Assembly: GCA_965649825.1 (NCBI GenBank)
Contig: OZ287696.1
Coordinates: forward strand, 291,101-355,100
Direction of reading: 5' to 3'
Length of the DNA stretch: 64,000 bases
Source of the DNA: Penicillus capitatus
Lineage: Eukaryota; Plantae; Chlorophyta
The notes below the pieces were generated by a model that saw only the letters and a program-made list of their open reading frames with translations, had not been told where the DNA came from and did no database searches. Below, one piece after another: positions 43,975 through 64,000 of the stretch; position 1 is the stretch's first letter, and every line of letters begins with the position of its first letter. The translations under genes were made by a program, and so were the position numbers.

Positions 43975-44052
43975 AACGTGTCCTTCCCAACAGCGTCACA
44001 TCCACCCTAGCCGCCGTAGTACAAATGTCTCGTCGGACATTACAGAAACTGC
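43975..44052. repeat. 78-bp dispersed noncoding element, copy 1
   Basis: 72/78 identical to 60784-60861, in the same orientation. Confidence 0.93.
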
Positions 44053-44080
44053 GTCTCGCCGTCGAACAACGTGATCAACA

Positions 44081-47000
44081 ATGTCAAACGTATCAAACGT
44101 AACAGACACGCACAACGACGAAGCTGCCTTCTCCCACAATCACATGGAGCTCACCACAGAGTTCGATCCGGAAAAGCTCGAGAATGTTCGCAAGTGGGTC
44201 AAAGCACAGACGATCGCCAGTCCACCTTCGACAAATGTCAAGAGCAACATTCTGTCTCTCGACGACTGTCAACGTTCTGCCTCTCAATCTTCGGCATCGC
44301 GTTCGAATTTCGAGTCAGAGAGCGAGAGACAACGGAGCAAAGGGACCGAATCCGAATTCACGAAGATGTCCAGCTCCGGTCAGAACTCGGAAAAAACTGG
44401 AGGGACAACGAGTTCCGATCAAAGCTCTTCGTCGTCGTTCGATTTCGAGAAGTTCTCAGAAGAGGATCGCGACAGCCGCAGTGCCTCTTCGCCGACCTCT
44501 TTCGTCTCCGCTGAAGAGCCGCATCAGGAAAAATCGCTCGTCCCCTGTTCTCTGTCCTACAAATCTGACAACTCTTCGCGTCGCTCTGCCGTTTCCGACT
44601 CCTTGTCGCAGCTGAATGGTCGCTTAGTCGACATGGGGTATGGTCCCATGGACTTGGATACGTCAACAGGTCAGCTGCCTGCCGTTCGTTTCTGTGAACA
44701 CAAGTGTTGAATTTCGCGCAGTTGAATCTGTCGGAAAGAAGCTTCGCGTTGTCCTGATGGACGTATGGCAGAAGAGTGAGACGTCGCGTCTGTTAATGGA
44801 ACAGACGAACAGATGGAAGACGGAAGAGCGAGCGCTAACAGCCAAGATCAGGTGTGTCGGCAGGGACACGACCCTTTGCGAACGCCCAGAGCCTTTCAGG
44901 TCTCTCGAGACGAAGCTGACCGAAAACGAGTCCGCTGGACGCACTGCCGAGCAGATGCGTCTCAAGGAAAGGCAGAATGCCGACCGCACCATGAACAGCC
45001 TGCAAGAGGCAAAGAAGACACTCGAGACGGAAAACAGCAAACTGAACCACGCATGCGCTTTGCTGAAACGCAAGCAGAGGTACGGTTGCGGAGACTGGAT
45101 TTGTGGCCGCAGAGGCGGCGGGTCTCCGTTTAGCGAAATGCATCGGCTGCTCGAGGAGGCGAAAAAGGAGGCCGGCGACAAGGCGAATGAGATAGAGACG
45201 CTTAGAGCGCGCTCAAGGGAACTGGTCGATCAAGAGAGGCACCACGACCGAAAACGCGACGAGATGCAGAGACACTCCAAGGCACTTGAGAACAAACTGA
45301 GGTCTGTCCTTGTGCCTCTGGCGAGATTTGAGATTCCATTCTACCGAACATCAGGTTAAGGGACAGCGAGCTGTCGAAACTGAGAATGCAACACGAGAGT
45401 TCATCGAAAGAGCAGGAGGTTCTCAAACGAAGGCTCGCCGAATGCGAAAAGGCGCTCAGAGAACAGGAACGGGAGAACCTGACTCTCAAGCAAACGCTTC
45501 AGTCAGACGTTCGATCACAGAATGCCGAAAAGGCATTGACCGCGGCAACAGATGAAATCAAGGCGCTCAAGGCACCTTCTCGAACGCCGCCTATCGGAAC
45601 GCATCTGCGATGGTCTGGTAGGAGAACCTGTCAATGGAGAGGAGCAAAAGGAACTCGCTGGATCACAAATGCGAGAAGCTGGCGATGGATCTCAAGAGGA
45701 ACCAGCAACAAGCGAAGGAGCGCGAGTCGAAATGTCAAGATCAAGAGCATAAGGCGCGACATTCCTGCAACAGAACGGTCCTGAGCTGTTTGTTCTCGGC
45801 AGATCTATGAGTTGGAGATCGAGGTCAAGAGACAAAAGCTGGCAGAGACAGCGAGCACTGTGCGCGCCGCGGACAACGAAAAATCACAGAGAATGCAGGA
45901 GCTGAGAAAGCAAGTCGCCAGAGTCGAATCTGAGAAGAGAGAACTGCAGCAATCCGTTCACGGCCTGTCGCAGAAATGCAACTTCCTGCAGAAGGAGACG
46001 CTTCAGTTGGACACCAAAAGATTTCAAGCCGAGAAGAGAGTCCAGGAGTGCACATCCGAGATTACGCGTCTCTCCGACGATCTCGCCGACAAGGGCTATG
46101 GGCTCAAGTCCGATTCCCCGCCGTGCTCCGTTCTTCCTGCGGTGATACTTGCTGCTCAGGGAGACGGCCAACAGGCTTTCGGAGACAGAGAAGTCGTTGG
46201 CGAGCAGCGAGAGGCAGATGCTTGTACAGTCGGAGGACATGAAAGGGACGGCGATAGCAAACAGCACTCTCCAAAGGGCGAACGCCAACTTGGTGACGGG
46301 AAAGATCTTCCTGGAGCACCGAGTGACGGAGTTGGAAGCGACATGCCAGAGACTCCGAGAGAAACTGCGCGAGAAAGTCTCCAAAGAAGAGAAGAGTATA
46401 GGGCGCGAGAGAGATACCTACCGCAGACTCAAGCACCGAGCACAGACGGAGAACTGTGGGACGGCTGTGCAGACGGGCCAGTAACGAGACGCGTGTGGGT
46501 GCACTAGGTGGAAGGAGCGATCTACGTCGCGAAGATGTCTTTCGGTTCTGCGAGAAGAGGATTCAAGATCTCACGGAGGAGATCAAGTCTCTTCAAGAGA
46601 ACAACAAGAAATGCGAATTCCAGATGAAATCGCTCGAGAATGGGCTCGTCGAATATCGCAGAATGGAAGCAGCCCTGTCTCTGCCACCTGATAAGTTGAA
46701 AGTGAGGTTCCAACTGCTGAGGTCGAATCCTCGCGCGCTCGGTTTTCCCTGCAGAACCGTCTGAGATTGGCGGAGAAGAGCATTACAGAGCTGACGACGA
46801 AGTTGATGATGCATAGAGAAGGAAAGACAGGAGAGATGCAGCAGTTGAAGTCGGAGAAAGAGAACCTCGAGATGCGGCTTTCGGAGCACAAACAGACGAT
46901 ACACAGGCTGCAACAGAAGCTGCATCAGACGCCTCCCGAACTCGCCGCGGCGCAGAAACAAGTCAAATCGACCGGAGAATCCCATGTCACAAGATTGTCT

Positions 47001-47536
47001 ATCCAAGTTGTTTAGATCAAGGCGCTGCGCGACAAGGTCAAAACGCAGAGCCAGCGACATCCGGTGGCCCAGCATCAGCAGATCGGCCAATGGACGGGAA
47101 GTGCCATTCCGAAGACGGGCAGCTCCGTGGACAGAATTCCGAGACCGCAGATCGAGAAAATTCTGAAGGTCCGAAGGAGCACAACGCCGTGGAAGATTGA
47201 CACGTGCGACTGCAGAGTCTGTGTCTGGTGATGGAGATCGACGATCCCGCTCTGCTGGCCGGACGGGCTGCGAAGCTGCAGAAGATCGTCGCATCGCTTC
47301 CAAGGATCCAGAGATTCGTTTCGGAGGTCTGCGAGATCGTTCTGTGTCACGGCGCCGATCTCATCCCCTATCATCTCAAACCGCCTTCTTCCAAAAGTAC
47401 GCCATCGAAGCCTCACCTCCGTCACTGCCCATCGCAGGCACCGTTCATCAAGAAGATGTTTCGGTCTTGGTGCCGTCTATCCTTAAGTATTGGATCCATC
47501 AGTTTTCGTAATACGACCCACGCACAGCATCGTTAA
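44081..47536 (+). CDS. Large coiled-coil protein with Ser-rich N-terminus, multi-exon (family not identified)
   Basis: A chain of plus-strand ORFs rich in E/K/R/L/Q heptads (44081-44710, 44640-45359, 45386-45784, 45812-46507 etc.), ending KLQKIVASLPRIQRFVSEVCEIV. Confidence 0.7.
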
Positions 47537-47572
47537 ATTCTTGTCAGTCGGATCTCGACAGAGAAATCAGAT

Positions 47573-49989
47573 CTAGAGCGTCCTGTTGTCGAGATTCAGA
47601 GAATCCTTCTTTTCGAGAATCTCGGAAAGCTTTCTTTTCAGTTTCTCTTTTGTCTTGGTCTGTTCGTCTGAATCTTGTGATCCATCCGTGTTTGAACCGG
47701 ACATCTTGCTCGTTTCACGGTCGGAAAAACTCTCATCTCTGGAATCGCTGTCGGGCTTCTTTGCCTCCCTCTCTATGTCCGTGATCTTGGTGCCGCGATC
47801 GCGATGACCGTCTTTTGATAGATGTCTCCTAAACCGTGGCACGAAGATTGCGGAAGGGTGGAACAATGCTCCAAGGAAGTGACCTGTGTGTTCTCCTGTG
47901 GCCTTTCTCCGGACTTGCACTTCTGTAAACGCGATCTCTGTTTGCCGATGACCTCAGCGAGGGCATTGGATCTCTGTGTCTTCCTAAAGACCAACACGAC
48001 GTGCATTCATCCGCGCGCATTGTTTCATCGACAAACCTCTGCTGGACGGAAATCGGTCCCCGGGTGGCGATTGAGGAGATCTGTAGGCGTACCCGCGTCT
48101 GCCTCTCTGCCTGTCGTCGGAAGGAAATCGACGATCACTAGGAAATCTTACGTAGCCTCTCGAGTACTCATCTCTTCGTCTGCGCCCTTCCTCTGGGCGA
48201 TGCTTAGGACGATGAGGACCAGACATGCGGTGGCGACGGGCCGTTGGGGATGGAGTTCTTCTCGGGGGCCGCCGAGTCCTATCACAAAACGCATCATCTT
48301 CATCAGGAAAGGCGTACATACTACCGAACGGACGCACTCTGTCAGCAAAACATCAACGAACGTGTTCGCTCATTAATGTCGTACTCACCCTCTGGTTCTT
48401 CTCTCGGGCTCTATGTGGCGATTGTTGCGCACAGGTGGTGTGCGCGTCCTGGGAGTGGCCGGCTTGGGAATGGGAGATGTTGTGGATAGGGGTGCTCCCG
48501 GCGATGGACGCGTGGAGGGAGATGGCGTTCCCTCTCTGGGATCTGGTGTCGAACTCATACGGTTTCTCGAACGAGGTGACGGAGACTTCGTCGGTGGAGA
48601 TCGCGAGGACACGTGCGGTTCGATGCTACGAGACTTTCGATCGTGATGCTCTCGTCTCCTTGCCAGAGGCAGACTGGAGCAGGAGAGAGATAAGAAACTT
48701 CTGAGAGGAAACGCAAGTGGGAGACTTGTAAGGTCGCGGAGGTGGACTGCTGTGCCGCGACTGAGGCGGCGAGCGACTCAACGAGTGATCTACTGGCTTC
48801 ACTCTCCTGTCGCGCTCCTCTCTGCCAGAGCACAGAGTCACAGAGCGATCGTGCAGAAGGGTGAGCGTGTCGCACCTGTGTTTTCTCTCTTTGGATGGCC
48901 GGCGGCGATTCCCGTCCAGCTTTGGAGATCTAGAACGCCGTGCTCTGTTTCTTTCCCAACTGGGACTCCTGTCGGGGGATCTGGATCTTCGATGCGGTTT
49001 TCTCGACGGGCGGGATTTTACATCATGTCGTCTTCTTGGAGATCTGGACCGCGAGGCAGGACGTCCCTTTGGCGTTCTTCGACGTTTCTGTGGAGGAGAG
49101 TAGCTGCGATCGCGCCATCGATCTCTGCGCTGTCTTCTGACATGATCCGGTCCTCCGCTGAATCGACTTCCCTTCTCTCTAAACGGTGGAAGTGGCCCTC
49201 TTTGAGGCATGGGCTCCGTTCTGGGAGGCGGCACCCATCTCTTGTTCTTGTCCTTCTTTAGCTGAGGTTCCTTCTGGGCGTCCTCTTTGGCGTCCAGTTC
49301 CGCTGACTCCATTTCGAGTTTTGCTTTCTTTCTCTGTTCCTCTATCGACTCCTGAACAGAAGGGCGTGAGAAGATGACGTGACGAAACGGCGAGAGACAA
49401 TGATGGTCGACTGCTGTTCTATCTTTTGGCGCACTTCCTCGGCTTTGGCGTCCAAAATCTGTTGTGGAATTCCGGTCTCGTTGGCTGCTGCGCTTGCGAG
49501 CAGAGTCCATAGCTCCTGCAGCCTCGCCCACGTGTATCATTTTTGCTCGTGCATTTCGAGCCTCACTTTCATGAAGAGTCCAGTGTTCTTCTCCAAAAAT
49601 GGCATCAGCTCTAGATACAACTCCTTCGGATTGAGGTCCTGGCAGAACAGGGCAGAATGAGGGGTGTAAAGGGAGTGACACGTTTGTTGGTACGTGCAGT
49701 TCTTCGAGTCTGTTGTGGATGAACTGAATCAGCACCTCGTCCTCGACTCCGAGAAGCTCCGTCACACGTTTCGCCGTCCACTCTCGAATCACCGCCCAAT
49801 TCACACGCGCGTAATCGACGACGACGTCCAGCTCCTTCGGAAATTTCTTCGTCTTGAGCATTCGCTTTTGCTTACTGCCAGACAAAACGGCCCGGCGATG
49901 AGAGCGCTGTGTGGGATACGCGAGTCACACTTGACGAAGCGCGCATCTTGACTCGCCGAGACACCGCGGAAGCCGCCAATGCCCGACAT
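47573..49989 (-). CDS. SRRM1: PWI-domain Ser/Arg-rich splicing coactivator (SRm160/SRRM1-like)
   Basis: MSGIGGFRGVSASQDARF.NKQKRML, REWTAKRVTELLGVEDEVLIQFI, LMPFLEKNTGLFMK|ELWTLL, and a long RS-rich tail. Confidence 0.9.
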
Positions 49990-50161
49990 CGATGTCGTTA
50001 ATGCACCCGAACAGAAGTTCCAAAGCTTAAATGCTCTGACGCGACGCACTGTTACGCGCTTTTACGACTCCCACTGTCGTCACTGGTAGAAGTCGTCGAC
50101 CAACACCAAAAACCTCGACGCCTTCTCGAAAGCCGAGCCTTTCGCGTCTCTTATCGCCTGG

Positions 50162-53100
50162 ATGCGTCGACACGGCAAGCGTCTTTACCTCCGGAACGTT
50201 GTCGTCGTTCAATGGGCGGTCATAGAGGAGCGAACGGATAGGATCTGTTCACACTTCGCCAGGACTGGATGGTGCAAGTTTGGGTCAACGTGCCGGTTCT
50301 CCCACGACACTTCGGATGCAAAGAGCGTCTCGCAAGCTTTAAGAGAATCGGACGACAAAAGAAGCGCGCGGACGGATCGTGTGTGCAGCTTTTTTTCGCG
50401 AACTGGACACTGCCGCTTTGGCGACAGATGCCGCTTCGTCCACGTGCGCGAGCAGGAAGTGCTTGCGGGTGTCGAGAACGACGTGGATCCTCATCCTCTC
50501 TTCATGTACGGCCGCCTCCGTCTTGACCGATTTCGTCCAATGCGTTTTCAGGTTGCTGGCTGAACGCAGAATGGCCAACTGCACGGCGAAACAGGTGCAG
50601 ACGTTCGTGCGCTACGCCGAGAACTGTCTGGTCAAGGACATGGGTTCGATGGAATCGTCCGTGCTCGAAACACTCGGCAGCGACGTCGGTGTCGAAATCT
50701 TGCGCAACCTTTTCGGCCCGACAAAGAACTTCGTCCTCAAGCAAACCACCTCCAACGCCCAGGTGCGTGACTCCTGTCGACCTGATGTTGGAAACGTGTC
50801 GTGTGCCAGACGTCTTTTCTTCACACGTTCATCCCGGTGCTGAGGCTGGCGACGTCGTCGCTCATTCTGACAGCGGCGCGCCAGACCTACGTCAACACCT
50901 TCTTGCAGGCACTGGGGCACTCTTTTCAATGGGTTTCGCTCCGTGCGGTGCTCGACGAACTTGTGTCCAGCGATCGCGCTCCTTCGCTTACGGAGGTCGA
51001 AGGCTCTTCGGTGAGCACGTCTGCTGTCGGCTTCATACTCTCAGCATTGTCGGTCCGTCGCCGTAGAGCGACGAATCGAGTGATTGGCTCGATATACTGC
51101 GCCCTTTCCTGGCCTTCGTATCGGAGATTCTGCAGAGATTTGATGCAATGTTCTTGGCGGAGATCGCAGAGCTGCATCCGTTTCTGTGCAGAGTGAAAGA
51201 GATCGTGAATCCAGATCTCCGTTCCCCCGATCGCAGATTTCGTCAATTCTCGAAGGATTTTGCAGAACTGACCAAGTACCGCACGTCCTTTTGCATCTTG
51301 CGTTCTTCTCGATCGTTGCGCCAGTTCTCTTGCGCAAAAGACTGGGAAGCAGCAGTTGAAGATAGACACTTCACAGAAACTGGAGAAACTTAACCTCGAC
51401 AGGAGAACCGCGAAGGAATCCATGATCGTAGTATATTCCCAGCCACCAGGTAAGGCGTGACTGTACTTGGTACACGGGTCAAACTTCTTCAAGGTCTTCT
51501 TCGACCGGAGGGGCAAAGACATGACAATGACCATGCGGATATTGCGCAAATCAATGTGGCGCCTACAGAAGCAGAGGTTTTATGCACCGTTCCGCCTTAT
51601 CTGCCACCCAACAAGCATGCTCTTCCTCCACTCTTTCTGGTCCAATGTCTTTTCGGTAGGGCCGGGACGGTGGTTCACCTCCCGGAGGCAAGTGTCTCTG
51701 CACATCGGGATTTGCATTTCCGTTTGCTCCGTTTCAATCTCGTCTCTGACATCCAGACCGCCATTCGCCACTTTACGGAATGCGGAGGGATCAAGGCGCT
51801 CAAAAAGATGGTCCAATTCACCCCACCTCTGTCTCTTCAACCGAGTCGGTTTCGCATTTCCAGGACAGACAGAAGAAAAGGGTGTCGGAAGGGCTAGACT
51901 TCAGAGAAGTCACCTTGGACATCTACAGACGTGTAGAGATCCAGGCAATCGGAGCCAACCAAAGGTCTGGCGTGTACTACAAGGTCACATCGTTGTCGAT
52001 ACTGGTGACTTGCCTCCTCACGGTCCACCTTCGCAGATCGCGTTCGACGAGCCAGACTTCGTGAGAAAGATGCCAGTCGCCAGAAAACCTCTGTTCTGGC
52101 AGAGGACGCACAGACTGGCCCACGGATCCTTAGCATGTCTGTGGTGGCAAGTGGATGACGAAGAGGAGCCATCAGTTGTGTTTGGCGCTGTCAGCGAACG
52201 CGACGAAGGAGACCTCATGCAATCTCGCCCTTCACTGGGCATCAGGTCCGCCTTCTTGACTCTCCTGTCTCTGAAACGGTTTCCCAGAGCGATCCCCGTT
52301 CCTTACAACGAGAAGCTGGCATCCCTCTTGTTCAAAGAGGACCAGGGCGCGCGGACATCAGAAGTCGTTCTGCTGCAAGCCGGTCCGAGCTTCTTCGCCT
52401 TCGAACCCATTTTGAAAGCGCTCAAGAAAGCGTCCATTCCGTTGGAACACATTATCACGCAGCCTCCTCCCAAGGTGGTAGCGATTCAGAACAGCAGCAC
52501 GAACTAACTGTATCCAGTGCGAAATCTAGCAGAAGGAGGACACTTGTGGCACCAAACGAGAACTGGCCCTTCCTGAGTATGCCGAGACAGGCGGAACGTT
52601 CAATCTCAGCTTCCTCTGCGAGGATAATCCGCCGAGGCACCCCAAGTGCACGGCCGATTCGAACGGAACTGAGGCGTAGAGATGTGGTTCTGTAGTCTGA
52701 TGAGCATCGATCCCTCGAATCCAGACAGCTTTCCCGTGGACGAACTCGTGCAATGCACGACACTTGACCGATGCCAGGCAGACGCTGTCAAGGCAGCATT
52801 GACAAGAGAGATGGCACTGATCCAGGGTCCTCCAGGAACAGGCAAAGATCCGCCTGTTTCTCGACAGCCGTACGTTAGTTGTCTGCAGGGAAGACGTATG
52901 TTGGCATCCAGATTGTCCGGGCTCTGTTGTCTTTCAAGAAAGCGCAGGAGGATCGATTGCCCGTTCCGCACTTTCCTTTTCGTCGGGAAGTCACATCGCC
53001 CCTGGGCCCGATTCTCTGCGTCTGCTTCACCAACCATGCCCTGGATCAGTTTCTCCTGGGCCTTGTGGAGGCCGGAATCGAGAATATTGTGCGGGTTGGC

Positions 53101-56100
53101 GGCAACAGCAGAACTGAGAAGCTGGCCCCATACAACCTCCGCAACCTGCACAAAGTGGGCTTGGGGCCGAGGGGATATGAACTCAGGAAAGAGATCATCC
53201 CGGAGGCCGAGAAGAGGATAAACCGACTCGACAACGATCTCCGACGTTCCCGAGAAAGGTCGTCTTTCTTCATTGCTCGAGATTTCAGTTCGTTGCTTTT
53301 GCAGTTACGTTTCCTGGTATCGAGTCGAGCCCTTGGTAAACCTGTCCTGTCCCAGCTTCGTCGAGTGCTTGGAAGCTGCGATTGGGTACGATGAGTACGT
53401 ACATGACAGGCAAACTGCCTGGTTAGAATGGTGCCGTTCGTACGCCAATGGTTTCGATGAGTGGTATCATCCACCGCAGACCACAAATCGCACCGTCGAC
53501 GAGCTGCTCGAGGCAGACGACTTCTGGGACTTGACAGAGGCAGAACACCGAAGATTCTATGAACACTGGGAGAAGCTGGCGAGAGACACAGCCAAAAAGG
53601 GCATTGAGAGGCGGCTCAATCGCTATGAGTCATTGGTCGGAGAGTACACGCAGCTGGAAACTGCCTCGAATCTGACGTGCCTGCTCAAGGCCTCCGTCGT
53701 TGGCATGACAACGACATACGTTGCCAAAAACCAGAACCTTCTCGCGGGACTGATGCCAAAAATCGTGATTCTGGAAGAGGCAGCCGAGGTGCTGGAAGCC
53801 CATGTTCTGACATCTCTCTCGTCCAATACGCAGCAGCTCATCATGATCGGCGATCACGAACAGCTCCGTCCAAAAGTCAACAACTATATCCTGCAAGCAC
53901 ATTCTGGATGCGGATTCGATCTGGATGTCTCCATGTTCGAAAGGCTCATCACCGACAACAACATCCCGTATGTCACACTTCAGATTCAGAGGCGGATGCG
54001 TCCGCAGTTCTCAAGGTGACCCTTTCTTTTCGTTATTGATGCACGGCGTCTCTCTGCAGACTGATCCGTTCGTCCATCTATCCGAAGTTGGAGGATCACG
54101 TTTCGGTGACAAGCTATCCAGCCGAGGTGCCTGGAATGGCGAAGACGTTGTTCTTTTTCGACCACGATCACCAAGAGAGGGGCCTGCAAGATGCCAAGTC
54201 CAAGAGCAACGAATTTGAAGCGCTGTTCGCTATCGAACTGGCGCTGTACCTTCTCAAACAGGACTGCTTCAAATCAGGTTTTGACTCGCTGCTTTGCAAA
54301 GTGTTCTCACGCCGTCCGCCATTGCAGGGGATATCGCAATTATCACTCCGTACGTCGGGCAGCTCTTGACATTGAAGAAGCACACGGCAGACGTTTCTCT
54401 TGTCATGCAGATCGATGACAAGGACAGAGAACTCCTCGAGAACTATGCTGAGACTGGTGAGCTAAGGAGCACCTCCGCCTGACCGCATTCTCTTGCGGAA
54501 TACGTGTAGACGAGACGAATGTCCCAGCAGAAGGGGCTCAAGCGGATGGCCGATCCGAAGAAAGGAAAGTCGAAGAGATGCCCAGAATCGATACCAAGAT
54601 GAACAGATGCGTTCGATTGGCCACGATCGACAACTTTCAAGCAAAGAACCGCGGATGTCGAAGGAGGACATCCAGTTCTCTTCGGTTTTCTAGGGAGAGG
54701 AGGCAAAGATTGTGATTCTGTCCCTGGTCAGAAATGAGAAGGAAGGACACATCGGGTTCGTCGGAATCAAGAACCGGATCAACGTCATGCTCTCCAGAGC
54801 GAAGGAAGGGATGTACATTCTGGGAAACTGCGAATCCCTGGAAGCCTACAGCAGGAACACGATGTGGAGAGATGTCCTGGCAATGATGAGAGAAGAGGGA
54901 TGTGTGGGCTCAGAACTCGAGGTGCAACTGAGCAATAATTGCTTGACAGTCCCTCTGCATCTGCTTGCTCTTTCTGTTTCAGCTGAAATGCCAGAACCAT
55001 CCAGAATGCATCACCAAGATCAAGCACTGGAGAGACTTTGATCTCTTGGCCGGAGACGGCGGCTGCCAAGCTCCCTGCAATCACCAGCTGTCATGCGGCC
55101 ATGTCTGCAGAAGGTGTGTGTACACCATGCAGAATGAATGACCAGTCTGCACGTCACCGTGCGTTTGCTCTTTAGGCGATGCCACATCGTCAACAAGGAC
55201 CACAAAGAAAACGACTGCTCTTTGCTTGTCAACGTCGAACTGCCTTGCGGACACGTCAAAACAAACATTCCCTGCCACGAGTATGCTCTTCCACTCAAGT
55301 GTACGAGAGACGGCCCTTTACTACAGGGCCGTGGAGCCGAGTAAGATTCTCTGTCAAGAGTATCTCGAAGTGGGTGTCCAAGGCTGTCAGCACGATCACA
55401 AGTACCGCGTTCGGTGTCACATGGCCGACAATTTCTCGAAGGACCCCGAAAGCTGCATCCACCATGTCCGCGTGCGCATGCCAATCTGCGGACACGAGAT
55501 CGAAGTGCCCTGCCACCAAGAACGCATCGCGATCAAAAACCCAGAGAGATGCAACCAGCGATGCCACAAGGATCTCGGGAACTGCGGACACACCTGTGAG
55601 AGAAGATGCGGAGACTGCATCAGTCGAACACTGAAGAAGATCCCGGGATTTGTGCTGTCGTCCTCAAACGCACACCTGCTGGATCACGGAGTTTGCCAGT
55701 CACTGTGCAACAAGACTCTTCTCTGCGGCCATCCGTGCAGAGAGAAATGCCATGCAGGTGAGATTGAATGATCAGCACTCTGTGCTTCGATACGTCTCTC
55801 TGCAGATCGAGATCACTGTGGACTGTGTCAGGAGAGGTGCTCTGTCGTTTGCGAGCATCGAAAAAGGTGCCACAAGAGATGCTCAGACCCCTGCGTCTCG
55901 TGCGCCGAGCCATGCTCGTGGAATTGCGAGCATCAAGGCGCATGCGATCTTCCATGTGGGGCGCCATGCAATCGGCTGCCGTGTGACCGTCGCTGCGACA
56001 AGCTGCTCACGTGTGGCTGTCGATGTCCATCTCTCTGTGGAGAGGAATGCCCCTCGCAACGATTCTGCCACAAGTGCGGTGTTCCGAGCGTCAAAGACAT

Positions 56101-57788
56101 GGTCGAAACCCACATGCGTGCATGTACTCTAAGCAATCGTGTCGTGCCTTCCAGGAGGTGGACATGACCATGTTCCGGAGGTATGGCGAGCTCACGGACG
56201 AGGAGCTCACTCAGGACCCATTGATCGTGCTCAGCTGCGGACATGCATTCCTGACGTCCACGCTCGATGGCCACATGGGCATCACAGAATTCTACCAGCA
56301 AGACAGATTCGGAAGGTCTATCGCCTTCCTTCGCAGAAATCGTGAAAACATTCTGTTGCAGGTGGACGCGGCCTGTGTTCGGCGAACGTCTGCGCATGTT
56401 TGACGACAGAAAGCTGTGTATCATCTGCAGAGCGCCGATTGTTTTCGTTCGACGCTACGGTCGAATCATCAACAAATCGGCAATAGATCTGATGGAGAGG
56501 GTCTTCTTCCAACACTTCGAGTCGAAATTCGGCAAACTGAAACTCAGACTGGACAAAACTGCGAACGAACTGGACACTCTCGGAAGTTCAAGGACCGATA
56601 GAGACAACAGAAACCTCATCAAAAACATTCAGTCCGTTAGGGATCGGATCAACGCCATTGCCTCTGAGTATCTCCAAATGGTGGATGATTCTGGCAAGTG
56701 CGTGCTGTCATGTCGCCTGTCCCCATCGAAAGATTGCTGATGTAACACGTAGAACGCCTTCACTAGATATCTATCAGAAGATCCGATCTTCTATTTTGGG
56801 CAAGAGCATCGAAGAAGAGCTGTCACCAGAGGAGACAGCAGAAAAACTCGAGTCCGTAACGGTCCCGGTTCCAGACAACACCAGGGCGTGCAGGTGATGG
56901 ACGGGGTTTCTCTGCGGTCTCATTCTTCTTGTCTTAGAGCCTTGGTGGCTCACATCTGCTGCCAGAAGATGTGGCTTCGATGCCAGACTCGTGCTCTTGT
57001 AGCCTTGAAGAGTAGTTCTTCTTATGGAAAGGCCAGGGAAGATTTCAAAGTCTTGTCGATACGCAGAGTTCTTTCGCATGTCGCCTCGTTTTCTATCGTA
57101 TAGATGAACGGAATTCGCAAGACCATAAAGGGAGGAAGCAAAAGAATACATGAGTGTCAGGACGAAATCGACAAGACACTCGAGGCCGCGGAGAAAACGC
57201 GCAGTGCCACCAGGGTAGTGGACGCCTGCAAAGGAGCTCTTCAGATTCATCTGGAGTCCATTCGATTTACGATCGAGATAAGTGGACACGAGGTGGCCAG
57301 AGCGATGAACAAAAACACTTTCCAGTTAGAAGACACTGGGAAACAACAGCAAACGGCCACGATAAGAAAAGCAGAGAAGCTCATTGAGATAGCACTCAAT
57401 GTCTGCACAAGTGTTGAACAGGTAGGCCCAATTGTTATTTCGCCACTAAGAGGGTAATGCGCAGAAGTCCGAGATACTCAGCATCAAAACCGAATTTGAG
57501 AAAGCGAAGCAGATTCTAACGGAGATGACGACCGAGGAGAAGCTCAAGCTGCTCATGAGAGTCATCATCAACGATCCGCGCATCCAGACGAATGAACCCA
57601 GAGGGCATATCTACCGATGCCCTAATGGACATTACTATATCATTGGCGAATGTGGAGGTGCAAATCAGGGAGGTGTATGCCCTGATTGCGGAGCTCGCAT
57701 TGGAGGCAGTGGCTTGACGAACGGTCACATGTTGGCCCCTGACAACACACAAATCACTGTCGAAGAGACCAGCCTCATGAACCGTTAA
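50162..57788 (+). CDS. ZNFX1: ZNFX1-like protein B: same architecture as A
   Basis: CSHFARTGWCKFGSTCRFSH and CSFFSRTGHCRFGDRCRFVH. QGPPGTG|KTYVG, CFTNHALDQFL, ILEEAAEVLEAH, IGDHEQLRP, TIDNFQ|GEE and NRINVMLSRAK. NF-X1 repeats, LSCGH..CIICRAPI, and HIYRCPNGHYYIIGECG..CPDCGARIGG. Confidence 0.93.
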
Positions 57789-58078
57789 TCCGACACCTCT
57801 GACCCCCCCCCAACGACCGATCCAAGCACTTTTCTATTTGTATTAAGTTGCTGTTTGTTTCACACGTTTCACACGTTCAGTACCACAATCTCCTTCCTCG
57901 TCGAGAAAGGAGGAGGAGTCCAACAGTGAGATGGCTGTTTTTGAGAAGAACAAAACTTGGATAACGATTAAGCGAAATGTTCATTTTGGGATGCTATCAT
58001 GGTGTTTTTGATCCCTCGGTCGCAAAACAAGCGAGCCAGCAAGAAGACATTCGTTACCGACCTGCAAAGGATCTCTAT

Positions 58079-58577
58079 CTACTCGTCCCCTTCACCACTC
58101 TTCCAACCAAATCTCTCCCGTAGGAATGCATTTATCTCTTCCGCTGCTTTATCGACCGATTGCGGATCACCACCAGTCTCCCTCTTTCTGGACAACATAA
58201 CCGTCGATCAAGGATGAGAGAAAGAGCGACGAACGGGAAGATGCTGGAATTGGCAACAGTCCATGCAGCCATATAGAAGGCTCCGTATACGCCAACAGCA
58301 GCAATGCCCACAGCAAAGAAAGCTGGATTCCATCCGAATGACGTTTAAAGAGTCTGTCTTCTTGCCATCATCTTACCTCCGATTCCCATTGCGCCGATCA
58401 CGAGCATCGGGTTGGTCGGTTCCGGCGGCGGTCCTTCGGTGTCGTAGTCATCATCATCCGAGGAAGAAGAGGAGCCTCTCGGGCGCGTCCTTCTGCAAGA
58501 CCCGTTAGAGAAGCTATCGCGAAGCTGTCGACCTGTTCTGCGTTGCGAGGCAGCGCGTGCTTAAGGTGGTACGACAT
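58079..58577 (-). CDS. Possible small membrane protein
   Basis: Spliced frame SSSSDDDDYDTEGPPPEPTNPMLVIGAMGIG|AFFAVGIAAVGVYGAFYMAAW. Neither end is resolved. Confidence 0.35.
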
Positions 58578-58655
58578 CCCTGAGAAACTCCGGCGACATA
58601 GGCTCCCAAAGCCCGACGTATCATCGTCGACATTAGACAAGTTAGATTCTTCCGA

Positions 58656-59066
58656 ATGGATCAGCGTGGACCTCCAGGTCTTGGGGGTGTCGAAACCTTT
58701 TCTTCTTTGAAATCCTACAGAAAACACCTTCGAAAGAAGACAAGGATGCTTCAGGACGCCATCGGTGCGTCCGTTCTTTCGACTCCACTCTCGGGGGACG
58801 TGTTTTTAGACAGAGACTGGCTCGGACCACAACAGAGCCAATCCCTGAAGCGTCAACTTTCGGAGATGAAATCGAAAATCACGAAAGTCGCGGAGGAGCT
58901 CGACTCTCTTAAGCAGGAAATGACAGAACCGCAAAGACATCGCATCAATGGACTGTTGAATCTCATCGATAAAGTTGTGCCCATTCTACCACGTTCACAG
59001 GACCACGTGCCATCGCCGCCACCTACACTACCAGACATCCGCATCAAAGAGGAAACGCACCTGTAA
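58656..59066 (+). CDS. Hypothetical protein with short coiled coil
   Basis: 136-aa ORF containing LKRQLSEMKSKITKVAEELDSLKQE. No family recognised. Confidence 0.45.
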   Translation: MDQRGPPGLGGVETFSSLKSYRKHLRKKTRMLQDAIGASVLSTPLSGDVFLDRDWLGPQQSQSLKRQLSEMKSKITKVAEELDSLKQEMTEPQRHRINGLLNLIDKVVPILPRSQDHVPSPPPTLPDIRIKEETHL

Positions 59067-59545
59067 GTGCAGACGGTGGTCTGTGTGCAGCGAGGCACGG
59101 TCTCTTGTTTGGACATCTGATGGGATGGTCACGCGATTCTCTTTCTCTCGATGTTTGTCGTGTATATACATACGATCCACCCATCCTTGTCTGATGATGC
59201 TGACGATGATACGAGGCTGTGTCATCGCTGCTCTGCGAAATGGTCAGGCGCATGTGAATAGCTGGTGTTAGTAGAGGAATGGCCTAGCCCTTTGAGATGC
59301 GACGCTCAACAAACGTGTGAATTGTTCGAATTAAATGCGTATTTAATACTCGACTGGAAATGATTGCACACATACGCGCTCGCATTTAACGTTCCCTGAT
59401 GGAAGCTTGAATCGCAACGAGTCTTTGTACAATCCAAACACATCCTGCTGCATTCCATCAGGCACGGAGCACTCCCTGACGTCGATTCTGACGGAGAAAC
59501 ACGTACAACGACAAATTGGATGGACACCGTCATGCAAACCTATCT

Positions 59546-60748
59546 TCAGGCTCGGTGCTTAGAAAGATCGATGGTTCGAAGCTCGTGGAGAAGCTCGATC
59601 TGTTGCTTCAGCGCCCAGTTTGGAATGAGGGAAGAGGGCGACATTCTCTCTCGGGTTAGGGGAGATCTTTTGTACAAGTCGAGCCACTGGGTGATGGCCG
59701 TACGCTCGTAGGAACGCCCATCTGGCGCGACCACTGGATCCTCCATGACCTCCAGCGTGATGGGGCACGTACACAACGATTCCATCTCGGACAGCACTTT
59801 TGTGAAAAGATCGTCCGATCGCAAACCACTCGAAGACGCTCCTGCCGACGTCTTCTCTCCCAGAGACAGCTCCTGGATTCTCTGGCCGATAAGACGGGCG
59901 ATCTCTTCGTGACACATAAAACTCGCCAGATCCAAAGCAGTCAGCGATTCGGCGTTCTCAGCAAAGGGATCGGCTCCGCAGCGCAAAAGGCTTCGGACGG
60001 CCATGACGTCCTCTTCCACGCATGCCAAATGAAGTATGGTCGTTCCGGGGGATAAGGGGACGTTGACATCCGCTCCGGCTTCGGCTAGTGATTGCACAAC
60101 GTCAAAGTGTTTGTTTGCCGCTGCATGAACGATGGCAGGATCAAGAGTCGTCGGCGAAGCTTCGAGATCTGCTCCGTATTGTATAAGACGGTCAACGATG
60201 GTGATATGACCGAGACTGGCAGCCAGAATCAGAGGACTGCATCCGTTGACCCACATGTTGACATCTGCTCCTGCATCGATGAGGCTCTTGACAATATCAT
60301 GCAGATCATGGCTTGTGGCCAAGTGTAATGGCGACGAACGTGCTTCGTCGACAACAACTGTGTACTTCACGTCTGCGCAATGAGGCAGCAACATATCCAC
60401 TCACTCTTTGTTTGTAATAGGCATGATAGGGGCTGTCCTCTTTCAGAGAGTTGAACTTCGCATTTCCTTTCTCATTCTCTTTGACACGCTGTTCAAACAC
60501 AATACCTGCATTTAATACGTCGTCTTGCGGTTTCCATACAAGTGTTGCCGCTTACCGTTTCTCGCGACGAATTGAGCTGTTTTGTCGGCTATTCCACGAA
60601 TATCGTGTGGCGGCAGGATAACGCCAATAGCGCCCGTCTGTGTTGCCGGAAGCAGGGCGTCATTTGAGGGAGCAACCGGGAGAGACGGTGTGACCGTCTT
60701 CACCTCCCCGACGGGTACAATAGAACTCTGCTTCGTTTCTGCCAGCAT
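59546..60748 (-). CDS. Ankyrin-repeat + U-box E3 ligase, apparently preceded in the same gene by an SF3A1-type SURP/SWAP domain
   Basis: SURP: GVILPPHDIRGIADKTAQFVARNG|IVFEQRV..KFNSL..SPYHAYYKQRV (intron 60506-60555). Ankyrin repeats SPLHLA, SPLILAA, AIVHAA and TILHLA. U-box LCTCPITLEVMEDPVVAPDGRSYERTAI.W...SPLTRE...LIPNWALK. Confidence 0.8.
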
Positions 60749-60783
60749 CAGAGAATGGACAAACGACGACCATCGACTTCCTT

Positions 60784-60861
60784 AACGTGTCCTTCCCAAC
60801 AGCGTCACATCCACCCCAGCCGCCGTACTACAAATGCTTCGTCGGACATCACAGAGACTGC
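60784..60861. repeat. 78-bp dispersed noncoding element, copy 2
   Basis: 72/78 identical to 43975-44052; lies ~35 nt upstream of the SURP-gene ATG. Confidence 0.93.
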
Positions 60862-61018
60862 TTACTCATGTCCATCGACGCATTCTTGGCACCGGGATCG
60901 GGCATGTGTCAACGAGCGGGCTGCAGGATTTTGACAAGTGGTGCTTAGAGAGGCTTTGGGGATCGCGGGTCGGAGAAATGCCAACGTTGCCTCGCCTGTC
61001 TTGAATCGGTCTCTCTCT

Positions 61019-61659
61019 ATGAGAACGCGCATGAAGCTCAAAGACACTCCTCAAGATCCATTCGTTCAAGCTGTCAAATACTTTGCCCTCTGTCTCTTAG
61101 CCATTGGATGTTACAGAGTCTATTCCTACGTCGGTACGTACGCTCGACCTTCTCCTGCCCCAAGAGAGATTCCTTCGGGCGATGGACGGATAGGGGAATA
61201 CACCTTGATACATTCCGTGGGTCTGTTGGATTCAGAAGATCCGTTCTTTGTGCGAATTGGCCTCTCACGCATGAAGAGGCTGATCCGGACAGAGAACGGT
61301 GCCAGAAAAGTCATCGAAGTATCTCTCGTCAAAAAATGTCAGATGCTGCTCGATTCCCAAACAGATCGAAGTTGCCCGCCAGCTCGTATGTGTTTTCTGA
61401 TTGGAACGGCTTCTCCTGTCTTCAGAGTTGATCCCAATGATCCTGGATGTCTTGGAAGTGCTCTCAACGTTCGACGCATCCAGACCCGCCCTGCAGCAAG
61501 TCATCTTTTCCCTGTCTTCCTGCCGCGCTGCTGATGGAATGTACCTTACAGGAAGATGTCCTCGAATGGATCGACGAAGGAATTCGAGAAGGATGGATCG
61601 ATGAAGCGACGTGTGCGCGTCAGTTGAAAACGTTGAGATGGGAACTCACGCGGCACTGA
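61019..61659 (+). CDS. Hypothetical protein with one N-terminal TM helix
   Basis: AVKYFALCLLAIGCYRVYSYV helix. Probable short introns link it to ORF 61447-61659. Confidence 0.4.
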
Positions 61660-61911
61660 ACAGTTCTCACTCTTACATAGATCAAGGACAGACCCTCGAA
61701 ATGCCCGTACCCGGATGTCATCATCACCGACTCTCGTCATACAAGGACGTTTCCACAGATCCGATCCGCGTTGCAACATCCGTCCGTTAACTCCATCATC
61801 CTTCCTTCCTTAAAAGGAGCTTGTCGCTTTCGCGTTTCGAGCATTCGACGCCGAAAAACGCGTCGTGTCTGTAACGGTTGAGGTTCGTTCGTCTAAGTCG
61901 AACGACTCGTA

Positions 61912-63824
61912 ATGGAATCACGTAACAACGCCCTTTGTACTCACATGAACGCAGCAGAGAGTGTTATCTCAGGGTACAAATGTCGTCTCGACGTGGTACT
62001 CCTAGTGGACGAGACAACCGACAACGTGACGTTGCAAATTGGAAGCGCTTCAAACGCGTCCAGCCACTCCTCAACCTCAACGACGGAGGGAGACGAAAAG
62101 AGACTCCCCGAAGACTCTCCCGTGGAATCTGTCGATTTTAAACGCATCCACAGTGATGAGAGATGCGACATCGAGACCGAAAGCGAGGACCACAAGGACC
62201 ACAAGGAGACAACGACAGCTCCCATCGTTCAGCAGGAAGAGACGCAACAACCTGCATTCCTGGAAGCTCTGTCGGCCACTTTGGCGCCGCAAAAAACGAA
62301 TAAGGTACAATCGTGTCATTTTCGGATCGAGGCGCACGATGTCGGCACCGCAGGAGCTGATGGATATGACTCTGGAAGCGCACAAGCAGTTTGAGGAGGA
62401 TAGGGCCAGGCATATTCAGCTGATCGAGGTTGTCATTTGTCCGAACAACCGTCCTAGTTTCTGATTTGACGTCTTCTTAGAGATTGGACGTGTGCTTAAG
62501 CACTTTGCGCAGAGAGAAGAGGAGAATGCTGGAAATGCTTGTCGAAATGCGTTTCCGAGCGGAGAAACCGGCCGATCGAGGGATGCATTTCATGGAATAC
62601 CAAGAACAGCTCCTCAGAAAAGTGGTCACTGGGAAGCAGCTCCTGCGCCGTCTCCAAAAGCACGTCGGGGAGATGGCCGACGAGAGAGACATGCATTTTC
62701 GCGATGTCAACCATCAAGGTGCAGGAGGAGAGACACGAAGAGAGGAGAGCAAATCTGTCGTCTTTACAAAGAAGCCATTGCCCGAATGGCTCTCAGAGAA
62801 TGTGCCTCCTGCATCCGTGAAACCCAGAAGGACATCCGCCAAGAGCCCAGCTGATTTGCATCCGCTCTGGGACATGGCATTGAAAGTAGAGAAGAGGAGG
62901 GAAGGGAACGTCGCTGATTCGTTGTATCAAGTCCAGTGGGTGCCCAAGAAATCGAAGTCGGCATCAGGAACAGTACCTTCGGAGGGCGATCGCTCACCAT
63001 CACCCCTGAAGGCGAGAAGCTCTTGTCCTAAAAAGCCGCCAGCCGCTCCGCGTCCTGCCTCTCTGTTTTCGACCCAAACGCCACCAGTATTGAAAGGAGA
63101 GAAACAACAGGCATCTACAGAAACGCGAGAAGCCGATGCACGGAAGGTGCTGCAGGAAATGTCAAAGATGGGATTCGAATCGACCGCACAAAAGAGCGCT
63201 TCGAGTGCTCCTGTCGCTCGAAAGGAGACCTCCGTTCCGTCTACGGTATCCCAAACGGCAGAGAAAGTCAAAGAGCCAAAGCCAGATGCACCCGAAGTGC
63301 CCAGGACGAGGGGAGTCGGAGAAAGTCCTGCGTTTCAGACAGCTGTCTCTTCGGAGGCACCAAAGCCCTCAATGTTTGCGCCTCAATCAAGACCTGGACA
63401 TCACCCGTCTCTCTTTCAAGCGCCAATCCAGGCACAACAGGTGCAAGCATCCAGCATCGCAGGAGGCGCTGCCTTTGGACAGCCATCTGTCCCGCGTGCA
63501 AACATCGGCCTTAACAGTGTGGCACCTCAACTGGGATCTCTGTGCCCACCGAACATCAGTGCAAGTGATGGTGGCAGTTCCAGTCAAGGGGGATTCGGAA
63601 AGTTTGCCGCCATTGGCGGCGGTTTTTCGGCGTTCGCATCTCAAGGCAGCTTCCAAGGAGTCTGTGGACAACATTCTGGTGGCGGATTTGTCCAGCAGAG
63701 TGGATTTTCGACTAGCTTTGCACCGTCCTCCGGCACAGAATTCGCTAATGCTGCATCTATGACTTCTCTTTTCGGAATGCGACCTGCTCAAGACAGTAGC
63801 AAGATGTGGGAAATGCGTAAGTAG
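61912..63824 (+). CDS. FG-nucleoporin, Nup214-like C-terminal region
   Basis: A coiled coil, then an S/P/T/A-rich spacer, then AFG, GGFG, GGF and SLFG repeats ending ..MWEMRK* (similar to the ..QMRK end I recall for plant Nup214). Confidence 0.6.
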
Positions 63825-64000
63825 TGACCCTATCCCGTTTTTCAAACCATTTCTGTGAATTCCTCTCATTCGAAGGAAACCGACGACATTACATTGCCAG
63901 GATTTACTATCGTCCCTCAAAACGAAAAGGATCAGATCATTTCGATCAACAATGTCCCTCCGAATTTAACAGGCATTGGATCAGATTTCACCTCTTCCGG

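Follow-up and report, generated by a model that had tools for sequence, protein, structure and literature searches.

Chimeric locus

We analysed a 64,000-nt stretch of genomic DNA from the green alga Penicillus capitatus (hereafter the window), in which two exons copied from the spliceosomal gene SF3A1 run directly into the 3' part of a gene for an ankyrin-repeat/U-box E3 ubiquitin ligase. The corresponding public contig (ena:ERZ25074695:ctg340469_44x_l, 942,848 nt) belongs to a metagenome assembly. All parts of the chimera read on the minus strand, and positions are those of the whole window. The features discussed below are the following:

60748–60556, minus strand: SURP exon 1, a copy of SF3A1 exon 1 with its ATG at 60748; R33L distinguishes its open reading frame (ORF), P0166, from the parental P0121
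60555–60506, minus strand: intron 1, 50 nt, GTAAGC...TGCAG, the same sequence as the parent's intron 1
60505–60405, minus strand: SURP exon 2, a copy of SF3A1 exon 2 in which KFNSL replaces KFNFL
60404–60399, minus strand: GTGAGT donor kept from SF3A1 intron 2, from comparison with both parents
60358–60398, minus strand: ligase-derived coding stretch that would need to serve as a cryptic intron, with candidate acceptors inside
60400–59546, minus strand: ankyrin/U-box ORF, 284 aa counted from GTG, the 3' 47% of an intronless E3 gene; 5 of its 855 nt differ from the full-length paralogue P0167
60749–63887, no strand assigned: duplicated SF3A1 upstream block Z', with the SF3A1 promoter region and divergently transcribed upstream genes
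44053–59545, no strand assigned: remainder of the duplicated block, X1', with a ZNFX1-like helicase gene, a PWI/RS-rich gene and others
43975–44052, minus strand: 78-nt copy of the SF3A1 promoter region, with its source at 60861–60784

Once spliced, SURP exons 1 and 2 read ...GAIGVILPPHDIRGIADKTAQFVARNGIVFEQRVKENEKGNAKFNSLKEDSPYHAYYKQR, and their top match among solved structures is the first SURP domain of human SF3A1 (80 bits); the top solved match of the U-box is plant PUB12 (54 bits). In Pfam, the spliced model scores 64 bits for Surp (E 1.3e-17), 84 bits for Ank and 60 bits for U-box, all far above the curated cut-offs (for the U-box, PF04564, 60.2 bits against 21.4). The chimera has a single Surp match, at residues 51–98, where the parental gene has two, and Pfam finds in it neither the PRP21-like region (PF12230) nor the C-terminal ubiquitin-like domain. 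The ligase ORF starts in the middle of a repeat and comprises about five ankyrin repeats and the U-box, the truncation having removed about 9 of about 14 repeats; the gene caller places its start at ATG 60394, which gives the 282-aa protein P0001. These results bear out every observation of the original prediction, made from the window's letters and ORF list: two exons (60748–60556 and 60505–60405) encode an SF3A1-type first SURP domain (SURP1), an ankyrin/U-box ORF follows directly (60400–59546), KFNSL stands where KFNFL is expected, and there is no space for the remainder of SF3A1. Left unspliced, the SF3A1 frame meets a stop 32 codons past exon 2.

Parental genes and junction

The chimera proposed in the original prediction is real at the DNA level, and both of its parents are intact elsewhere on the same contig. 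That contig also encodes a second member of each of the 90% protein clusters to which the exon 1 ORF and the ligase ORF belong. The full-length SF3A1 that was expected elsewhere in the genome is located about 88 kb away in inverted orientation (locus L003). Its spliced product of 687 aa contains two Surp domains and matches PRP21_like_P (163 bits) and, slightly under the cut-off, ubiquitin (23.5 bits); the nearest named sequences are from Mamiellophyceae (67%) and land plants (63–64%). The intact ligase (P0167, locus L004), about 65 kb away and also inverted, is a 596-aa ankyrin/U-box protein encoded by a single exon.

In blastn comparisons, L003 6862–10353 corresponds to window 63887–60396 at 98.48% identity over 3,493 nt, L004 10926–21791 to window 60411–49549 at 98.78%, and L003 1–3824 to window 47874–44053 at 98.80%. 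The 19.8 kb at window 44053–63887 are thus made up of two duplicated blocks, one of 3.5 kb ending in SF3A1 intron 2 and a 16.3-kb one that begins mid-gene in the ligase, and on the record the duplicate copies lie at about 311–334 kb (minus strand) and about 396–416 kb (plus strand). Proteins encoded in the larger block occur twice on the contig, and those encoded beyond 44053 once, except for one with a paralogue on another contig of the same sample.

We mapped the junction by a three-way comparison of the window, the SF3A1 parent and the ligase parent. The window equals the SF3A1 parent through ...AAACAAAGAGTGAGT and the ligase parent from GTGGATATGTTG... onward, the latter stretch starting with GTGGAT. 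Microhomology at the breakpoint amounts to 2 nt, the GT at 60400–60399 being all that both parents have in common there, and a 7-nt ACAAAGA (60411–60405), four bases upstream of this GT, is also present in both. The junction of the chimera is free of long homology and of transposable elements; the other junction of the rearrangement carries a 3-kb filler without a Pfam match. On the SF3A1 side the break lies 6 nt into intron 2, and on the ligase side it lies mid-exon, in the second helix of an ankyrin repeat (...ELVDMLLPHC...). Several observations identify GTGAGT as the donor of SF3A1 intron 2: in the parent, read-through of this site meets a stop, the ORFs of related species diverge immediately past ...RVS, and removal of the intron yields a complete SF3A1. 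Scans of JGI metagenomes gave no match to the junction or to the shared SF3A1 exon 2 sequence, a result that is uninformative, as the species is absent from them.

Arrangement in a sister species

As an outgroup for polarising changes we used a sister species (sample ERZ26696514), which shares about 82–84% nucleotide identity with the species of the window. At the syntenic site the sister has a 602-aa ligase (P0002), with homology to the window ending at 60411, and about 74 kb from it, in opposite orientation, a full-length SF3A1. This SF3A1 directly follows genes for a beta-amylase, a phytoene synthase (PSY), an amine oxidase (PDS-like) and a 437-aa protein. The same gene context also precedes the chimera (L005 1–9625, on the sister side, is collinear with L002 366–9999), and Z' is collinear with the sister's interval from PDS to SF3A1. 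Judged by this synteny, the chimera occupies the ancestral SF3A1 site. The intact SF3A1 of the window species, for its part, keeps the ancestral downstream region, L003 6864–20237 being collinear with L005 6124–19544.

The two arrangements can be written as orders of five segments: A, the flank past the ligase block; B, the 3' half of the ligase gene and X1; mid, the 5' half of the ligase gene, about 60 kb and the PDS region; E, which is Z and SF3A1 exons 1–2; and F, the remaining SF3A1 with its downstream region. The sister reads A-B-mid-E-F, and the window species reads A-B-E(rev)-mid(rev)-B(rev)-[Y]-E-F, with three of the four flanks agreeing with the sister arrangement. Y is an insert of 3,037 nt (L003 3825–6861) at the other new junction, between the ligase-side and the SF3A1-side blocks; it has no DNA match among the loci compared, and its two ORFs have no Pfam match. 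Since the duplicates differ by only 1.2–1.5%, against 16–18% between the species, the rearrangement is recent.

Two contigs of the sister sample, L005 (1.39 Mb) and L006 (0.80 Mb), share 98.9% identity across the 20.5 kb surrounding SF3A1; on this comparison, the sample holds two haplotypes or two strains.

Splicing and predicted products

The introns of parental SF3A1 measure 50, 80, 52, 52 and 49 nt, and the stricter version of a scan for ORF-joining candidates of the form GT[AG]AG[TC]...YAG gave a small cluster at 46–53 nt. In parental intron 2, an AAG acceptor is the sole in-frame choice and is followed by coding-like conservation in the sister species, which supports its use. The same stretch (L003 10345–10449) resembles two adjoining introns of 52–53 nt (GTGAGT...CTATAG and GTACGT...CTCCAG); removing both of these breaks the frame, and the 80-nt intron ending in AAAG alone keeps it.

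In the chimera, the orphan donor lacks an inherited acceptor. The AGs that were present at fusion lie at 32 and 62 nt only, both of them out of frame, and an in-frame product needs a newly made acceptor because the join runs from 6 nt inside an intron to the middle of an exon. The predicted outcomes are as follows:

No second splice: 130 aa (predicted)
32-nt intron, CAG ending at 60373, best pyrimidine tract: 99 aa, KQR-T-stop (predicted)
47-nt intron, ACAG ending at 60358, out of frame: 140 aa, SURP only with a 42-aa nonsense tail (predicted)
40-nt intron, donor 60404 to AAG ending at 60365, in frame: 370-aa fusion (predicted)
43-nt intron, weak GTGGAT donor at 60400 to ACAG ending at 60358: 369-aa fusion (predicted)

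Both in-frame joins named in the original prediction are arithmetically correct (40 nt for 370 aa, 43 nt for 369 aa). Since local introns are typically about 46–53 nt long, the out-of-frame 47-nt acceptor agrees best with the usual size here, for which 40 nt would be exceptionally short. From the sequence, transcription from the copied housekeeping promoter probably continues, and splicing probably removes intron 1. We judge that the predicted fusion would be encoded by a minor share of transcripts at most. Efficient translation of the 282-aa gene-caller protein appears unlikely, given the long upstream ORF before ATG 60394.

Substitution patterns

Within the SURP part (294 nt), the chimera lineage has acquired four changes, of which R33L and the Phe-to-Ser replacement in KFNFL are non-synonymous and the other two synonymous, and the parent lineage one synonymous change; parent and sister differ by 1 non-synonymous and 16 synonymous changes. 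In this dN/dS-type comparison with the parent, the contrast of 2:2 in the chimera with 1:16 between parent and sister (rough binomial p of about 0.02) indicates that constraint on the chimera's SURP is clearly relaxed. The second Phe of KFNFL, which the chimera has lost, is present in 45 of 45 other aligned SURP1 sequences and is the equivalent of Phe83 in human SF3A1, a residue that sits in a 3-10 helix (PMC9514218). Human SF3A1 SURP1 binds SF1, with Phe81 as a contact residue (PMC9514218); the equivalent of Phe81, the first F of KFNFL, is kept in the chimera.

The ligase part (852 nt) differs from its parent at five positions, 1 non-synonymous and 4 synonymous, counts that are too small for a selection test; between the two species, the ligase family shows 33 non-synonymous and 55 synonymous changes. 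The ligase counts would fit either weak constraint or chance. The original suggestion that the piece is a decaying duplicate fits the SURP part, with its 2:2 ratio and the loss of an invariant Phe.

Searches for the domain combination

Searches with the fused model are dominated by ankyrin repeats, and the SURP part was also searched alone. Among the matches listed for the fused model (120 of 243), none has Surp together with U-box or Ank in one protein. A composite SURP and U-box query of 1.84 billion representatives gave nothing above 120 bits apart from SF3A1s and the ligase of the window itself; a protein whose SURP and U-box are both remote could have been missed, as its score would lie under the listing threshold. 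Local phmmer comparison of 438 fetched proteins found none matching both the SURP and the U-box parts, and in the literature we found no description of a protein combining SURP with U-box and ankyrin. The architecture was described as unfamiliar in the original prediction, and the listed matches, the composite query and the literature agree in yielding no SURP and U-box protein. On these searches the combination looks unique to this lineage, as expected of a breakpoint product.

Neighbouring genes and other features of the window

The ZNFX1-like helicase gene (ZnF_RZ, AAA_11) of the larger block is duplicated, at window ~50500–58400 and at L004 12600–19800. When polarised with the sister, frameshift-type indels in the helicase region are mostly on the parent side (+2 at the equivalent of 58357, −1 at 56134). 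The parent side has another indel, +1 at 49665, outside the helicase gene; the window side has one, at 59243. It is possible that the window copy of the helicase gene is the better preserved of the two. An older ZNFX1-like helicase paralogue (about 70% nucleotide identity) lies just past the duplicated block, at window 37406–40210, and a further relative on another contig of the same sample (L008) adjoins a long terminal repeat (LTR) retrotransposon.

The ankyrin/U-box genes form a local multigene family: a 597-aa paralogue is found upstream of the parental ligase (L004 5953–7746; L001 5956–7749), and the sister species has more copies downstream of its SF3A1 (L005 14303–19240). The 78-nt promoter-region copy is placed between a 209-aa gene on the plus strand and a zf-CCCH-like gene on the minus strand. 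An Rfam scan of window 1–64000 found no family at gathering score.

Discussion

We propose that the locus is probably a young chimera formed at a rearrangement junction, and mainly a neutral or decaying by-product rather than an established E3 ligase or gene family. In this lineage, a block of about 65 kb, reaching from the middle of the ligase gene to SF3A1 intron 2, would have been inverted, and both breakpoint regions would have been duplicated in inverted orientation, 16.3 kb from mid-ligase and 3.5 kb up to intron 2; staggered breaks would yield duplicated breakpoints of this kind. The junction B(rev)-E would have left a complete ligase and, further on, a complete SF3A1, and the junction of B with E(rev) would have joined the SF3A1 promoter, exon 1, intron 1, exon 2 and GTGAGT to mid-exon ligase sequence. 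As expected of such an inversion, both breakpoint regions are found twice, in inverted orientation, on one contig. In the light of this history, the original idea of a captured SF3A1 5' end holds insofar as the SURP piece copies that end; the ligase, however, captured no exon, as the chimera stands at the ancestral SF3A1 site.

Three other ways of forming the chimera were considered and rejected. A retroposed chimeric gene is incompatible with an SF3A1 copy that retains intron 1 and 3.1 kb of upstream DNA, and is also contradicted by the 15.5 kb of downstream genes carried along with the ligase copy. Tandem duplication or re-insertion of a circle, suggested by the permuted order of Z next to X1 as opposed to X1-Y-Z, fails on the position of the chimera at the ancestral SF3A1 site. 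Non-allelic homologous recombination between the two 78-nt elements predicts junctions other than those observed.

Several observations nevertheless weigh against the interpretation we favour. On the structural side, the ancestral adjacency of A and B, which concerns the fourth flank, beyond window 44053, has to be inferred. The simple model predicts neither the unique 3-kb insert Y at the other junction nor the 78-nt promoter fragment at the far end of the block, and the duplications, of 3.5 and 16.3 kb, are much longer than those of at most 1.9 kb in Drosophila. On the side of function, the ligase ORF is still open, with one non-synonymous and four synonymous differences from its parent. Parental SF3A1 itself probably uses an AAG acceptor for intron 2, as the reading frame suggests, and in the chimera both the AAG and the ACAG acceptors were made by chimera-specific substitutions, G at 60365 (T>G) and A at 60359.

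The structural points would be accommodated if the same chimera and duplicates had arisen not by one staggered-break inversion but by template switching, of the type of fork stalling and template switching or microhomology-mediated break-induced replication (FoSTeS/MMBIR), or by serial duplicative transposition. The 3-kb filler, the microhomology at the chimera junction and the great length of the duplications relative to the Drosophila cases all speak for such a route, as does the 78-nt fragment, which lies exactly at the end of the 16.3-kb block and has five of its six changes on its own lineage. We nonetheless regard this route as unlikely, because the overall order of segments exactly fits inversion with duplication, and because the 78-nt piece shares only 92% identity with its source, less than the 98.5% of the blocks, and may stem from an older, unrelated event. 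The 78-nt copy may be error-prone templated filler of a replication-based event or an older small duplication.

A different possibility is that the locus works as a new gene, in which the SF3A1 promoter drives a transcript with a 40-nt cryptic intron, encoding a 370-aa SURP1-ankyrin-U-box E3 that docks onto SURP1 partners (SF1) in the early spliceosome. In its favour, an in-frame join exists; its AAG was absent at fusion and was made by T>G at 60365, with a second AG 7 nt further. At the block-average rate, chance would produce an in-frame AG in about 1% of cases and two AG-creating substitutions with a probability of about 6e-4, both figures being post hoc, and substitutions show some clustering near the junction. 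The ligase ORF is undisrupted, with zero or one non-synonymous change on the chimera lineage, the U-box is well formed, and the equivalent of Phe81, with which SURP1 of SF3A1 contacts SF1 (PMC9514218), is kept. Against these stand the length of the intron, which at 40 nt is shorter than every intron inferred here (46–53 nt or longer), the rival 47-nt ACAG acceptor out of frame, and the loss of an invariant Phe of the SURP fold together with relaxed constraint on SURP. Moreover, the substitution counts are tiny, and the changes cluster near the junction and in the 78-nt fragment, so that they could reflect error-prone repair and not selection. On balance we hold a working gene to be rather improbable, and it is mainly because of the acceptor-creating substitutions at 60365 and 60359 that a functional fusion is entertained at all. 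A sharper version, in which the locus is a newborn gene under selection, would have T>G at 60365 creating an in-frame 3' splice site, such that the orphan SF3A1 donor splices into the ligase frame and yields a U-box E3 with an SF1-binding SURP1; we find this quite improbable. If it were true, a ligase would have come under the promoter of a housekeeping splicing factor and been aimed at the branch-point recognition step of the spliceosome.

The duplicate might instead have donated a promoter, with the SURP exons as a decaying leader and a truncated 282-aa ankyrin/U-box protein made from the internal ATG 60394. The gene caller predicts exactly this 282-aa ORF (P0001), and constraint on SURP is relaxed while the ligase ORF stays open. 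We consider this very unlikely, as ATG 60748 opens an upstream ORF of 99–140 codons that overlaps or precedes ATG 60394 and should strongly suppress its use, and as the truncation begins in the middle of an ankyrin repeat with about 9 of about 14 repeats gone.

Finally, one could suppose that the long-read metagenome assembly wrongly fused repeated or allelic stretches at the junction. This artefact reading could be argued from the metagenomic origin of the contigs and from the sister sample, whose two 98.9% identical contigs show a haplotype divergence of about 1% that resembles the 1.2–1.5% between the duplicates, but it is extremely unlikely given that the 2 nt shared at the junction fall far below the need of an overlap-based mis-join, that the window and the public contig are distinct (60 differences) and yet have exactly the same junction, that a second new junction completes a coherent rearrangement, and that copy-specific substitutions polarised with the sister are roughly symmetric, with 59 in the window copies and 44 in the parent copies. 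The 60 differences cluster at 61472–63310, 48182–48379 and 39062–41548, and window and public contig are identical from 48379 to 61472, including the junction. The first cluster contains 36 of the differences, one 9-nt indel included, in the region of a 446-aa ORF (window 62484–63824, plus strand) that has a low-complexity FG-like C-terminus and no Pfam match. Some variants in this cluster resemble the paralogue and others are private, a mosaic that points to allelic differences or to gene conversion between the duplicates.

With a neutral or decaying junction product as the preferred interpretation, the locus offers a new domain combination built by rearrangement in one step, for which the two parents, the two new junctions and an outgroup are all available; the event is recent, at about 1.3% divergence. 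An expressed fusion would amount to a natural experiment in which an E3 ligase is tethered to a docking module of the early spliceosome, and would show one substitution giving rise to a splice acceptor. Should it prove silent, the locus is a caution that a striking architecture read from raw sequence can be the scar of a breakpoint, and the 282-aa ligase called at this locus is a truncated duplicate.

Comparison with known systems

Inversions accompanied by inverted duplications have been explained by a staggered-break model by Ranz et al. 2007 (PMC1885836). The rearrangement described here resembles staggered-break inversions (PMC1885836) in that two non-repetitive breakpoint regions each occur twice, in inverted orientation, at the ends of the inverted segment, in that these regions are single-copy in the outgroup, and in that there is no long homology at the junctions and partial gene copies lie at one of them. 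It differs from the inversions of D. yakuba, whose duplicated tracts are at most 1.9 kb long (PMC1885836), in the length of its own tracts, 3.5 and 16.3 kb, and from staggered-break inversions generally in the extra 3-kb filler and the 78-nt templated-looking piece at its junctions.

Young chimeric genes at duplication breakpoints are known from Drosophila and other genomes. The locus shares with them a DNA-level duplication that placed one gene's promoter and 5' end before the 3' part of a second gene, the retention of both parents, restriction to one lineage and a divergence of about 1% since formation. Unlike them, its join runs from 6 nt inside an intron to the middle of an exon.

At the protein level, the first part of the chimera corresponds to SF3A1/Prp21, a subunit of SF3a in the U2 snRNP: its exons 1–2 are 99% identical to the organism's own SF3A1 and encode SURP1. 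In contrast to SF3A1/Prp21, the chimera is without SURP2, the PRP21-like region and the ubiquitin-like domain, and the equivalent of Phe83 is Ser. The second part, a predicted ligase, resembles U-box E3s of the plant PUB type in its C-terminal U-box pattern CPI...DPV...G.TYER..I..W. Prp19 is a known spliceosomal U-box protein. Unlike PUB proteins, with their ARM repeats, and Prp19, with its WD40 repeats, the substrate-binding part of the chimera consists of ankyrin repeats, a partner of the U-box that is not among the canonical animal U-box families (PMC3087547).

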